This document shows, one piece after another, positions 33,794-37,145 of a DNA stretch of 64,000 bases. Source of the DNA: Parasitella parasitica NRRL 2501 (lineage: Eukaryota > Fungi > Mucoromycota); NCBI GenBank assembly GCA_025201805.1, contig MU619251.1, forward strand, positions 1 to 64,000, read 5' to 3'. The notes beneath the pieces were generated by a model. The model worked only from the letters and a program-made list of their open reading frames with translations. It ran no database searches and was not told the origin of the DNA. Position 1 is the first letter of the stretch; each line of letters starts with the position of its first letter. The translations under genes and the position numbers were made by a program.

Positions 33794-33978
33794 TGGCAGC
33801 TACGCATTGAAACTTTATTGCATGCGCCCGACCACGGAACATTTTTTTTTTTTCCCCCCAAATACCTTTACAGAGTATATACAGTCGTTCCAACGCCAAA
33901 GGGCGGTTTTTTAAAAAAAAAAGTGCGGCTAATAAAATTTCCCAAAGAGCGCTTTTAATTTTTCCAAAAGGCGGTTTT

Positions 33979-34203
33979 CCCCTCTTCCATCATCAGTGCT
34001 ATCCGCCTCGACGTCCAAAAAACGATCGATGAGGATCAAGTGCGCAATATCTTATAAATCAATTTAGATTGCTACAAACTTTTAGTTTTAGTTCTCACCC
34101 TTCAATTCGTCAAAAATCTTAAAAGCTAATTGCGCCCGCCGCTTGGTTACAATCCTTGGATTGTGATTTACGCGGAGCAAGTAATAAAAACCTTCAAAAA
34201 AAA
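33979..34203 (+). mobile_element. 225-bp LINE 3' fragment nested in the left arm of the TIR element
   Basis: Encodes ..IISAIRLDVQKTIDEDQVRNIL*, matching the end of the 16-kb LINE ORF; poly-A; 13-bp TSD AAAAGGCGGTTTT at 33966-33978 and 34204-34216. Confidence 0.88.
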
Positions 34204-34376
34204 AAAAGGCGGTTTTGATTCATCCAATGGGCGGCATAATTTTTCCCAAAGAGCGGTTTTTATTTAAATCTCAGGCTATCATGTCCATTTTTTTTTTTAA
34301 AACTTAGGCTATTGTGGCCTCTATCTTGTCCATTTTTTTTTCTAAAGCTCAGGCTGTCTTGGTATCCTTATCAACA

Positions 34377-34601
34377 ATGACTACTATCAGTAGAGAGCGT
34401 GCAGTATGCATGTTCTACCATCAAGATTATGACAAGACTGAAGCCATTGAACTACTCAATGCTATTGAAAAGCTAGATGTTGAAATTTGCTATAAAGATG
34501 ATCCCTGTAAACCGATTTTGTGCTCAATCAGAAGTCTAGTTCATGATCCTGAATGTCATCAGTATCCTGCTTTACTACAAAAAAAACAAAAAAAGATATA
34601 G
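34377..34601 (+). CDS. 74-aa ORF sharing its first ~46 codons with the element's main gene
   Basis: MTTISRERAVCMFYHQDYDKTEAIELLNAIEKLDVEICYKDDPCKP, then a divergent tail. Confidence 0.45.
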   Translation: MTTISRERAVCMFYHQDYDKTEAIELLNAIEKLDVEICYKDDPCKPILCSIRSLVHDPECHQYPALLQKKQKKI

Positions 34602-34732
34602 CAAATAGAAACAAGCTCCCAATTAAATAACGGCTTCTTTGCAACAAAGCCATGCTAGGGCTTTAATCTCGATTTTTTTTTGAAATAAAATAAAATCGCT
34701 TAACTTCATTTATTTATACTTTGTGATAAAGA

Positions 34733-36048
34733 TTATTTAGATCTCTGTAGAGCCTGTTTTCTGCAATCAAAAACTTTAATCTTGTCAGAATCGTTTAAAA
34801 GTTCCTGTGTATCATAGATATGACTAGCGTCACAGCTGGCTAATTTGTCGATGATTAATTTCTTGATATTTGGATTGTTCCTATTATTATAGATCGTGAG
34901 GAGCCGCTTCAATTCTTTTCTAAAAAAAAGGATTTACTTTAAGAACACTTTCAAATCTTCACAATTTGTCGTTAGTCCCGCAAAATCAGTTGCCACAATG
35001 CAGACTCTCTCCATTGAAGAAATATACACCAGCATGTCTAATGAATAAACTGAAATTTAGTTATGATCATGATGACATAACATTTCCTTTCTCACCCTGC
35101 ATATCACCATCCGCATGTATCTGTGGCAATATATGTTCTTGCTTGTTTAAGTCCCTTTCCAATAACGATTCATTTGCATTACAGTAAACAGAGGTGAAAA
35201 CCTTGCTAACCAAGGACCTGTTCTTCAAGTTTTTGCACATTAGATTCAACAAACGAATGCGTGAGTCATCATCTTTTCCGCATGTAGACTTTCTCGCATA
35301 CCCTATCACATGATAACCTTCATCTTTTAAGCTCTGAATAAATCTTTGATAGCGCGGTAAATGGCTCACAATGTCTTCTATTACATTGTCTAAACGCTAG
35401 GTTAATTATGATCCAATAAAATTATGAACGGTTACTGTATGTCTTACCGATATACTCATCCTTTAAAACATAGAGTGAGCGTACTGAAACTTTCTGTCGT
35501 AGATCATTGGATTTTCTCTTTATTCCACTTTCAGTCAAATACAATTTTCTTGAGTTACACCATTTGCCAAAACCATAAGCAGTTTTTTCACTGAAAATAT
35601 CCGCGTATTTCCAAACAACGCTTAGAATATCATTCATGCTTAAGCTTTTGCAAGCATAAGCTTCTTCATTGTTTGGGTTTACTGGTAAAAATGCAGTGTT
35701 CAGGAATTTTATAAGTTGAGATTGACTGACTAAACAAAAAGTTTATCTATGAATAATCGAAATACAAAGCATTTTCTTTTTTGATAAAACTTTACCAATT
35801 TTTTTCGTTTCAACTTCAATTTGATTGTTTTTTTCAGGAGCTTCAGTTGTCTTTTGATAAGTAAGATAGTTATACGGATCTGCTTTTATGGAATTTGTAT
35901 ATAGCAGAAATGGTTTACAGGGATCATCTTTATAGCAAATTTCAACATCTAGCTTTTCAATAGCATTGAGTAGTTCAATGGCTTTAGTCTTGTCATAATC
36001 TTGATGGTAGAACATGCATACTGCACGCTCTCTACTGATAGTAGTCAT
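34733..36048 (-). CDS. ~358-aa protein with a C-terminal resolvase/serine-recombinase-like domain; exons 36048-35796, 35729-35448, 35389-35096, 35037-34938, 34880-34733
   Basis: Four GT-AG introns of 57-66 nt give an open 1077-nt CDS; VIGYARKS...VFTS...ERD...CIVATDFAGLTT...KKLIID. Confidence 0.8.
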
Positions 36049-36082
36049 TGTTGATAAGGATACCAAGACAGCCTGAGCTTTA

Positions 36083-36412
36083 GACAAGATAGAGGACACG
36101 ATAGCCTAAATTTTTAAAAAAAATGGACAAGATAGAGGACACGATAGCCTGAGCTTCAAAAAAAATGGACAAGATAGAGGACACGATAGCCTGAGCTTTA
36201 AAAAAATAGACAAGATAGAGGACACGATAGCCTAAATTTTTAAAAGAAATGGACATGATAGAGGACACGATAGCCTGAGATTTAAAAAAATGGACAAGAA
36301 AGAGGACACGATAGCCTGAGCTTTAAAAAAATGGACAAGATAGAGGACACGATAGCCTGAGCTTTAAAAAAATAGACAAGATAGAGGACACGATAGCCTG
36401 AGATTTAAAAAA
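36083..36412. repeat. Subterminal tandem array, 8 x ~41-43 bp
   Basis: Unit GACAAGATAGAGGACACGATAGCCTGAGCTTTAAAAAAATG. Confidence 0.95.
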
Positions 36413-37145
36413 TATTGACCTTTAGAATAAAAAAAAACCACCCTTTGAAAAAATAAAAACCGCTCTTTGGGAAAAATTATACCGCCCATTGGATGAATCA
36501 AAACCGCCCTTTGGCGTTGGAACGATTGTAATAAACTTGGACTGCATAAAAGGCATCCACTTGGTACCGTATCGTATCGAAAACAGTGCAATCACTACCA
36601 CGTGTATAATTGTATGTTATTAATTAAGGATTCTGTAACTTGACTAATACACAAATTCTATACTTGTTCCTGGTTTTTTAATAGAGGATGTAGAGGGTGG
36701 GCAAAAACTTGAACTTACACTGTAAAAAAAAAAAAAAAAAAATTGCAGAATGCAAAGGCCAATGATCTTGGAAATGACGAGGTTAGAAATAAAAGCTAAT
36801 ATGAATCTGTCAAGTTAAAAAGAAAATCTTTTAGATGCCATAAAGAGAAAGAGAAATGACTAGGGGGGGGGGTTTATCAAGTTGACGTTAGGGAAGCACG
36901 GAAATTAATGATTAAAATTTAGATTGGATGTAGATGAGGCTTTGGACGTACAAGTTAGTTGGCAATTCATCTTCCAAACCGGAGAAGAAACAAGTAGAAC
37001 GATGTATCAGCAAAGTATACATGCAAAACATTTGCTCAGAGCAAATTTTACCAGCCGCACTGTATAACAAAATAAAAAAAACAAAACTTCTGTATAATTT
37101 CGCTCTTTCTCCATCTTTTACATTATAATTATTCCACACAAGAAA

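Follow-up and report, generated by a model that had tools for sequence, protein, structure and literature searches.

The stretch analysed here, which we call the window, comprises 64,000 nucleotides (nt) of contig MU619251.1 of the fungus Parasitella parasitica NRRL 2501, whose genome measures 32.8 Mb. Within it lies a 2.65-kb insertion, at positions 33880 to 36530, with a TA on each flank and a single intact gene, read from the minus strand, that encodes a protein of 358 amino acids (aa) with the predicted fold of a serine recombinase. No second gene was found within this element by open reading frame (ORF) list or similarity comparison, and no similarity to a DDE transposase was detected between 33880 and 36530, in agreement with a preliminary description made from the sequence alone. 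That description had taken the element for a new class of fungal transposon moved by a serine recombinase, with the caveat that a Tc1/mariner enzyme might mobilise it in trans with the gene as cargo. The evidence given below supports the recombinase-like nature of the protein and, as regards the movement of the element, argues for the caveat.

The gene has a coding sequence (CDS) of 1077 nt in five exons, the structure of which was read from contigs of one probable RNA run that are 100% identical to the window. Each of the four introns, of 66, 58, 58 and 57 nt, has the ends GT..AG and is seen as a joint in these contigs, and none of the five exons holds an in-frame stop. The window gene is expressed and spliced. 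These joints confirm the five-exon minus-strand CDS at 34733-36048 that had been proposed, with its length of 358 aa, and the serine of its VIGYARKS motif, which had been placed at about residue 213, is Ser213. A model with a 46-nt intron 3 was ruled out by the RNA joints, as was an 18-nt intron or an in-frame TAA between exons 4 and 5, which are joined across the 57-nt intron. According to the transcript contigs the 3' untranslated region (UTR) reaches at least 34485, so that it overlaps an inverted copy of exon 1 in the left arm of the element. An RNA contig of 147 nt that is identical to this arm (34367-34513) had about 4.7 times the depth of the messenger RNA contigs (1437 vs 304), depth being a poor measure in such contigs. 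The promoter region is present in both arms, and transcription may converge on the 3' UTR of the gene and give rise to double-stranded RNA. One further joint, of low support, skips 84 nt in exon 3 (35215-35300); its shorter side covers 27 letters and its ends read CT..AC. If real, this skip would delete the GY.RKS loop described below, and it may be an assembly artefact. Between young copies of the gene, the differences listed comprise at least 9 synonymous and 18 non-synonymous ones, with 62 further differences lying beyond that list.

To describe the fold, AlphaFold2 models of two public homologues stood in for the window protein, namely P0010 (362 aa, full length) and P0043 (C-terminal domain), with confidence scores on the predicted local distance difference test (pLDDT) of 92.5 and 94.1, respectively. 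Each was compared exhaustively with 48,161 PDB chains using VIA-align. The top 13 structural matches of P0010 were all serine recombinases, and the first unrelated fold followed at Z 5.6. TP901-1 integrase and gamma-delta resolvase led the ranking at Z 9.8 (for the latter, 2rsl, with a root-mean-square deviation of 2.5 A over 102/115 residues), followed by Tn3, Sin, Bxb1, TnpX and IS1535 TnpA. For P0043 the top 14 matches were all serine recombinases, with 2rsl at Z 10.2 and the first unrelated fold at Z 5.5. Foldseek likewise returned serine recombinases as its top 11 matches, with weak E-values (5e-3 to 3e-2). Among the structural matches ranked by Z were the IS607-like structures 6dgb and 3lhk (Z 7.0-9.5). 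The structural match that the preliminary description had called for is thus specific and replicated in two models. Residue 206 of P0010 pairs with residue 1 of the resolvase, so that G210, Y211, R213 and S215 fall on G5, Y6, R8 and S10. Over 110 homologues this GY.RKS motif is conserved to 96% (G), 99% (Y), 98% (R) and 89% (S), as was expected of R-x-S in a true recombinase family, and R224, R238, S239, S247, R259, D260 and G301 (P0010 numbering) are likewise conserved to 89-99%. Residues 86-177 of P0010 match winged helices (RFX DNA-binding domain 1dp7, Z 6.2, 73/76 residues) and residues 206-349 form the catalytic fold. In the predicted order, a small domain at the N-terminus is followed by a winged helix and this in turn by the serine-recombinase fold at the C-terminus, with DNA binding first and catalysis last, which is the order of IS607 TnpA to which the protein had been likened.

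The arginines of the D-R-x-x-R motif are essential in the serine recombinases that have been studied. At the corresponding place (D67, R68 and R71 of gamma-delta resolvase) the family has D-(F/Y/H)-A-G-(L/I), with D in 73% and G in 93%, and none of the 110 homologues carries an arginine at either arginine position. Translation of the window protein bears out the replacement of DRLxR by DFAGL noticed earlier. After the last strand both models have short helices alone and no long E helix, and a homodimer prediction for the catalytic domain returned a score of 0.01, which gives no answer either way. Sequence searches of the window protein were made exon by exon. Pfam searches of each exon and of 117 homologues gave nothing relevant, with no match to PF00239 even at E<=1, and over the whole genome PF00239 had no match at E<=10, though it was found in 12 of 14 control genomes. 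In the PDB, a sequence-profile search matched a designed TIM barrel and a receiver domain but no recombinase, and HHalign of the family gave probabilities of 2% against one true recombinase and 4% against seven, with the motif loop GY.RKS alone aligned. The models indicate that the protein is a remote, rebuilt relative of the serine recombinases, which may or may not be catalytically active. On these models, the part of the earlier interpretation that concerned fold and motif is well supported.

If the protein had lost catalysis altogether, it would be a DNA-binding protein of recombinase fold, retained for binding instead of strand exchange; it might, for instance, regulate Tc1 transposition or the promoters of the element itself. 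The loss of both D-R-x-x-R arginines, the confinement of the profile-profile alignment to the GY.RKS loop, the winged-helix domain and the promoter-proximal repeat arrays in both arms of the element are what such a protein might be expected to show. However, Y, R, K, S, R224, R238, S239, S247, R259 and D260 are kept at 89-99%, in the manner of an active site, which binding alone would not call for, and we regard a catalytically dead protein as very unlikely.

A profile search placed the window protein in a family of 799 clusters at 50% identity, 425 of them at E<=1e-10. All members come from Mucorales or Mucoromycota, and each named member is a hypothetical protein of Mucorales (from Hesseltinella, Halteromyces, Phycomyces, Rhizopus, Cunninghamella, Helicostylum, Mucor and Pilaira). 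About 20 diverged family loci are present in the Parasitella genome, and all exons of the window gene align, exon by exon, to public Mucorales proteins. At the protein level these exons are 80-88% identical to a Helicostylum protein and 74-88% identical to a cluster with a Rhizopus stolonifer protein among its members. Three DNA runs labelled as other organisms (X9, X10 and X14) hold the stretch of the gene from 34495 to 35960 at about 96-97% identity in other flanks; their contigs also hold many ends of the terminal inverted repeats (TIRs), and the flanks in the window lie outside their coverage, so that they showed no empty site. These similarities may reflect spread between Mucorales; P. 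parasitica is a mycoparasite that fuses with its hosts. Full-length family genes in Halteromyces radiatus and Mucor saturninus, at whose loci no flanking inverted repeats were detected, may be decayed copies or candidates for domestication. A full-text search of the literature found no paper containing both 'serine recombinase' and 'Mucoromycota'.

The outermost inverted repeats of the window element (33880-33910 and 36500-36530) are 31 nt long and 97% complementary. Since other aligned copies keep TA/CAGT, the slash marking the junction, while the bases further out differ, the TA belongs to the flank and the element proper begins with CAGT. The 31 nt consist of this TA and 29 nt with one mismatch, which agrees with the near-perfect 29-bp TIRs and TA flanks first described. 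The full inverted repeats extend far beyond these 29 bp, to about 630 nt. From the terminus inward the right arm contains four direct repeats spaced at 22 bp, the 41-bp tandem units, the 5' UTR and the start of the coding sequence (~48 codons), and the left arm is its mirror image with fewer of the 41-bp units (Table 1). The left-arm copy of exon 1 opens a truncated ORF (34377-34601), as seen in the ORF list and by protein match. Strains or copies differ in the number of 41-bp units, since 282 nt (from 36083 to 36366) are skipped in a contig of run X14. A deletion of 68 nt has occurred in the right arm between two GGCGGTTTT direct repeats; the stretch is kept in the left arm and in a miniature inverted-repeat transposable element (MITE) at C27.

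Two observations on the arms stand apart from the question of mobility. The left repeat is interrupted by an insertion of about 225 bp with an A-run at its end. At least 16 loci contain its last ~80 nt, with a copy at C4 matching over 237 nt, and because these recurring ends always consist of an A-run followed by unique DNA, we interpret the insertion as a poly(A) retroposon tail that landed in the resident element. It suggests that a family of the type of long or short interspersed nuclear elements (LINE/SINE) is active in the Parasitella genome. A weak match to U3 small nucleolar RNA, antisense to exon 1, occurs in both arms (35905-36076 on the plus strand and 34349-34519 on the minus strand, with 24.5 and 19.1 bits). 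It is probably due to chance, as it lies below the gathering score of 34 and leaves large parts of the model unmatched.

Table 1. Features of the window element and its gene (positions in the window).
Feature	Position	Strand	Basis
Left flanking TA, Tc1/mariner-type target-site duplication	33880..33881		TA before CAGT in every aligned copy
Left TIR, outer part: CAGT terminus and AAAGGGCGGTTTT-type direct repeats	33882..33978	+	91% identical to the 256-bp MITE at C27
Secondary insertion in left repeat: poly(A) retroposon tail, with duplicated AAAAGGCGGTTTT on both sides	33979..34203	+	
Left TIR, inner part	34204..34265	+	62 nt, 97% complementary to 36451-36512
Left-arm remnant of the 41-bp tandem repeat, 2-3 units	34259..34345	+	Inverted-repeat search
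Inverted copy, in the left arm, of the 5' UTR and the opening ~48 codons of exon 1	34321..34520	+	200 nt, 95% complementary to 35905-36104
Exon 5, with stop codon	34733..34880	-	RNA joint 34879/34937; frame check
Exon 4: encodes CIVATDFAGLTT, place of the D-R-x-x-R motif	34938..35037	-	RNA joints 35037/35096 and 34879/34937; translation
Exon 3: start of the recombinase-fold domain; VIGYARKS 35309-35286, Ser213 codon 35288-35286	35096..35389	-	RNA joints, translation
Exon 2: winged-helix domain	35448..35729	-	RNA joints, homologue alignment
Exon 1: small N-terminal domain, mostly within the right inverted repeat	35796..36048	-	RNA joints, homologue match
Tandem array upstream of the gene, 7.9 units of 41 bp	36083..36412		Tandem-repeat analysis
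Right TIR with 22-bp-spaced direct repeats	36413..36528	-	Alignment with the left arm and the C27 MITE
Right flanking TA	36529..36530		Read directly; copy comparison

The same ends occur elsewhere in the genome. The exact terminal 31-mer was found at 12 places (0 for the reversed control), and some of these copies form MITEs of 122, 256 and 671 bp. The element of 671 bp, at C169, has termini 29/31 identical to those in the window and holds the remnant of a DDE_3 C-terminus with its LPPYSPELNPIE motif. An element of 4.25 kb at C102 (96950-101200) has TA/CAGT ends and a TIR of 264 nt with seven AAAGGGCGGTTTT-type repeats. This TIR aligns with that of the window element without any change in the TACAGT terminus or the AAAGGGCGGTTTT repeats. 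An ORF of the C102 element matches PF13358 DDE_3 (E 7e-22), and the fact that four copies of this type are 99-100% identical suggests recent activity. The genome probably contains, then, an active transposase with matching AAAGGGCGGTTTT repeats, to which that enzyme would bind. The DDE remnant at C169 and the DDE_3-bearing element at C102, whose TIR has the same repeats, place the ends of the window element in the Tc1/mariner lineage.

Further observations concern the wider Tc1 population of this genome, which contains at least 447 DDE candidates. In the C102 type, copies of which also occur at C166 (there without the left end) and C38, the 264-nt TIRs extend as far as the DDE_3 gene and take in its 3' end. 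One copy has a PD-(D/E)XK-like ORF with a GFGEVK motif upstream of the transposase, another passenger gene in a Tc1 frame. Many Tc1 DDE_3 genes form identical inverted pairs 3.7-8 kb apart (among them C46:211974/215677, C25:91976/96073, C128:47407/51184 and C29:17133/23841), and palindromic or 'sandwich' Tc1 structures are therefore common here.

We consider it most likely, with a probability of about 0.6, that the window element is a non-autonomous Tc1/mariner element of the inverted repeat-direct repeat (IR-DR) type that is moved in trans and carries a recombinase-like passenger. The features expected of a member of this group are present: a TA flank with CAGT termini, IR-DR repeats common to a DDE_3 relative, and DDE sequence in elements with the same ends. 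In such an element the transposase gene would have been replaced by what we term a recombinase-like unit, made up of inverted lineage-specific tandem arrays, a promoter and exon 1 in both arms and one five-exon gene. The window element would be cut out and pasted at TA by a Tc1 DDE transposase acting in trans, with the AAAGGGCGGTTTT direct repeats that it has in common with the recently active DDE_3 element as binding sites for that enzyme. The 358-aa protein would then not be the enzyme that defines the TA/CAGT ends; it may bind the inner tandem repeats and give the unit a selfish benefit, by DNA binding or by strand exchange. The new class of transposon originally envisaged is not borne out by the Tc1/mariner ends, the C169 remnant and the C102 element, and the existence of a copy with these TIRs and DDE sequence inside, as at C169, is the kind of finding that argues against it. 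Mobilisation in trans with the gene as cargo, first raised as a caveat, becomes the better reading in the light of these DDE relatives.

If the serine-recombinase-like protein were instead the element's own transposase, the element would be excised as a circle and integrated by strand exchange with a 2-bp stagger at TA, and the flanking TA would be a crossover core and no duplication. Joined ends would make a palindrome around TA, as in a recombinase crossover site, and no DDE gene lies in the window element or in most intact copies. The protein itself would suit this role by its specific predicted fold with the nucleophile motif at the exact position, its IS607 TnpA-like domain order (with 6dgb and 3lhk among the matches) and the strong conservation of its putative active-site residues. 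But at C169 a DDE remnant lies between the same termini, a DDE_3 element has homologous TIRs that include the same direct repeats, and a CAGT terminus next to TA is the hallmark of Tc1/pogo ends, as in Tc1, Tc3 and Sleeping Beauty. The replacement of both D-R-x-x-R arginines by F/Y/H and L/I, the missing long E helix after the core and the blindness of profile searches to the Resolvase family speak further against it, and we judge movement by its own protein to be unlikely.

The other copies of the unit show how it is arranged with respect to Tc1 elements. Readable ends were TA/CA in 5/5 family copies (the window element, C14, C209, the left end at C3 and the Hesseltinella element that encodes P0010), each with subterminal direct repeats of its own. 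The long inverted repeats at C14 and C22 hold a DDE 3' fragment together with the recombinase-like exon 1, and at C14 the repeat array of the unit adjoins a DDE gene that is truncated at its MDNAPIH motif. Two identical inverted Tc1 copies enclose the unit at C29, and at C56 and in Hesseltinella it adjoins a full Tc1 element, the Hesseltinella pair sharing one TA. In the latter case (Hesseltinella vesiculosa, GCA_002104935.1) a recombinase-like element of 2.9 kb, which begins TA/CAGTTATTTC and has inverted repeats of 405 nt, and a Tc1 element of 2.3 kb meet at one common TA. This 5-kb pair is 98% identical at two loci, at one of which another Tc1 end adjoins its left side; the two elements either move together or target Tc1 ends. 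Likeness of termini tracks likeness of protein: the window element and C14 have related ends and are 45-53% identical in exon 1, and C209 has different ends and is 33% identical. On this account the association of unit and Tc1 looks old rather than the result of a recent capture.

Such arrangements would also be seen if mobility had two layers, the inner unit (~34266-36412) moving alone as an IS607-like module, through binding of the serine-recombinase-like protein to its repeat arrays, and tending to land in or near Tc1/mariner elements that would then transport it further. The unit does occur in three frames, namely within IR-DR TIRs in the window, beside a truncated DDE gene at C14 and beside a full Tc1 at C29, at C56 and in Hesseltinella, where it shares its TA with a Tc1 end at both loci. 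IS607 has multiple subterminal repeats that bind TnpA, and the lineage-specific inverted tandem arrays, of which those in the window and at C14 have a TAGAGGAC core in common, recall them. Against this, no copy was found in which unrelated DNA directly borders the repeat arrays of the inner unit, every readable outer end is TA/CA, and adjacency to Tc1 may merely reflect transposon-rich regions in a genome with at least 447 DDE candidates in 32.8 Mb. The catalytic doubts raised for a self-moving element apply here as well, and we rate a separately mobile inner unit as distinctly unlikely.

Several points nevertheless weigh against a Tc1/mariner element moved in trans. The enzyme that would move the window element is one that we infer. 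No intact DDE gene was found between exactly the termini of the window element, in a genome where parts of the loci read N and may hide partner elements, and over the terminal 31 nt the closest DDE-bearing relative reaches an identity of only 24/31. A serine recombinase that crosses over at TA would likewise leave a TA on each flank. Decay would be expected of a mere passenger, but in this protein the putative active-site residues are conserved to 89-99% across a very large family. Exon 1 in both arms, its inverted second copy flanking the gene, and the lineage-specific arrays recur in at least 10 diverged copies. Together, this conservation and recurring architecture suggest that the protein does something essential for the spread of the unit. 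The size of the family, the strict conservation resembling that of an active site and arrays resembling recombinase sites are the reasons why we keep the alternatives in play. More speculatively, the family may be a living eukaryotic lineage of serine recombinases, possibly derived from an IS607-type TnpA, that has acquired introns, a rebuilt active site (Y-R-K-S with R224, R238 and R259 in place of the D-R-x-x-R arginines) and binding sites of its own in the repeat arrays, and that exchanges strands in Mucorales, moving either the inner unit or the whole TA-flanked element. We hold this to be a tentative and rather doubtful possibility.

Serine recombinases are hardly known in eukaryotic mobile DNA, where IS607-like, bacterial-style genes occur mostly in giant viruses and protists (PMC3627910). 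What we describe is a large, intron-bearing and expressed family with a predicted serine-recombinase fold across Mucorales, the readable ends of which are always of Tc1/mariner type. If the protein is active, it would represent a fourth enzyme class for eukaryotic DNA transposons and could be a small site-specific recombinase with activity in fungal cells. Should it be a passenger only, it still joins Fanzor and nuclease genes as evidence that the Tc1/mariner elements of these fungi carry selfish genes that act on DNA.

Three known systems offer points of comparison. With the small serine recombinases (gamma-delta and Tn3 resolvase, Sin, Hin/Pin) the window protein shares its best fold match, 2rsl, and a G-Y-x-R-x-S motif that aligns residue for residue. 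Unlike them, it lacks the arginines at R68 and R71, has an HHalign probability of 4%, and carries its DNA-binding domain at the N-terminus with only a short helix after the core, whereas theirs follows a long E helix at the C-terminus. With IS607 TnpA (IS1535, 6dgb, and M. jannaschii, 3lhk) it shares the domain order, the catalytic fold at Z 7.0-9.5 and the position of the Y-x-R-x-S nucleophile, and both kinds of element have repeated motifs near both ends. IS607 elements have neither terminal inverted repeats nor duplications (PMC3627910), in contrast to the 31-nt (in full ~630-nt) inverted repeats and TA flanks of the window element. IS607 keeps the D-R-x-x-R arginines, both of which are missing here, and the window gene further differs in encoding an RFX-type winged helix instead of a MerR-type helix-turn-helix, in its four spliceosomal introns, and in having no Pfam similarity and no TnpB/Fanzor partner, whereas IS607-type transposons often have one (TnpB/Fanzor2). 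Fanzor1-only elements (Bao and Jurka 2013, PMC3627910) are Tc1/mariner elements that carry a passenger gene alone and have mariner TIRs with TA duplications. The passenger in the window has a serine-recombinase fold and not that of a TnpB-like nuclease, its exon 1 and promoter are doubled in both inverted repeats, and the gene is separated from the termini by lineage-specific tandem arrays. In other respects the window element resembles the Fanzor1-only elements: it has TA flanks, CAGT termini and IR-DR repeats, it has one unrelated, conserved passenger gene and no transposase of its own, and a related DDE_3 element resides in the same genome.

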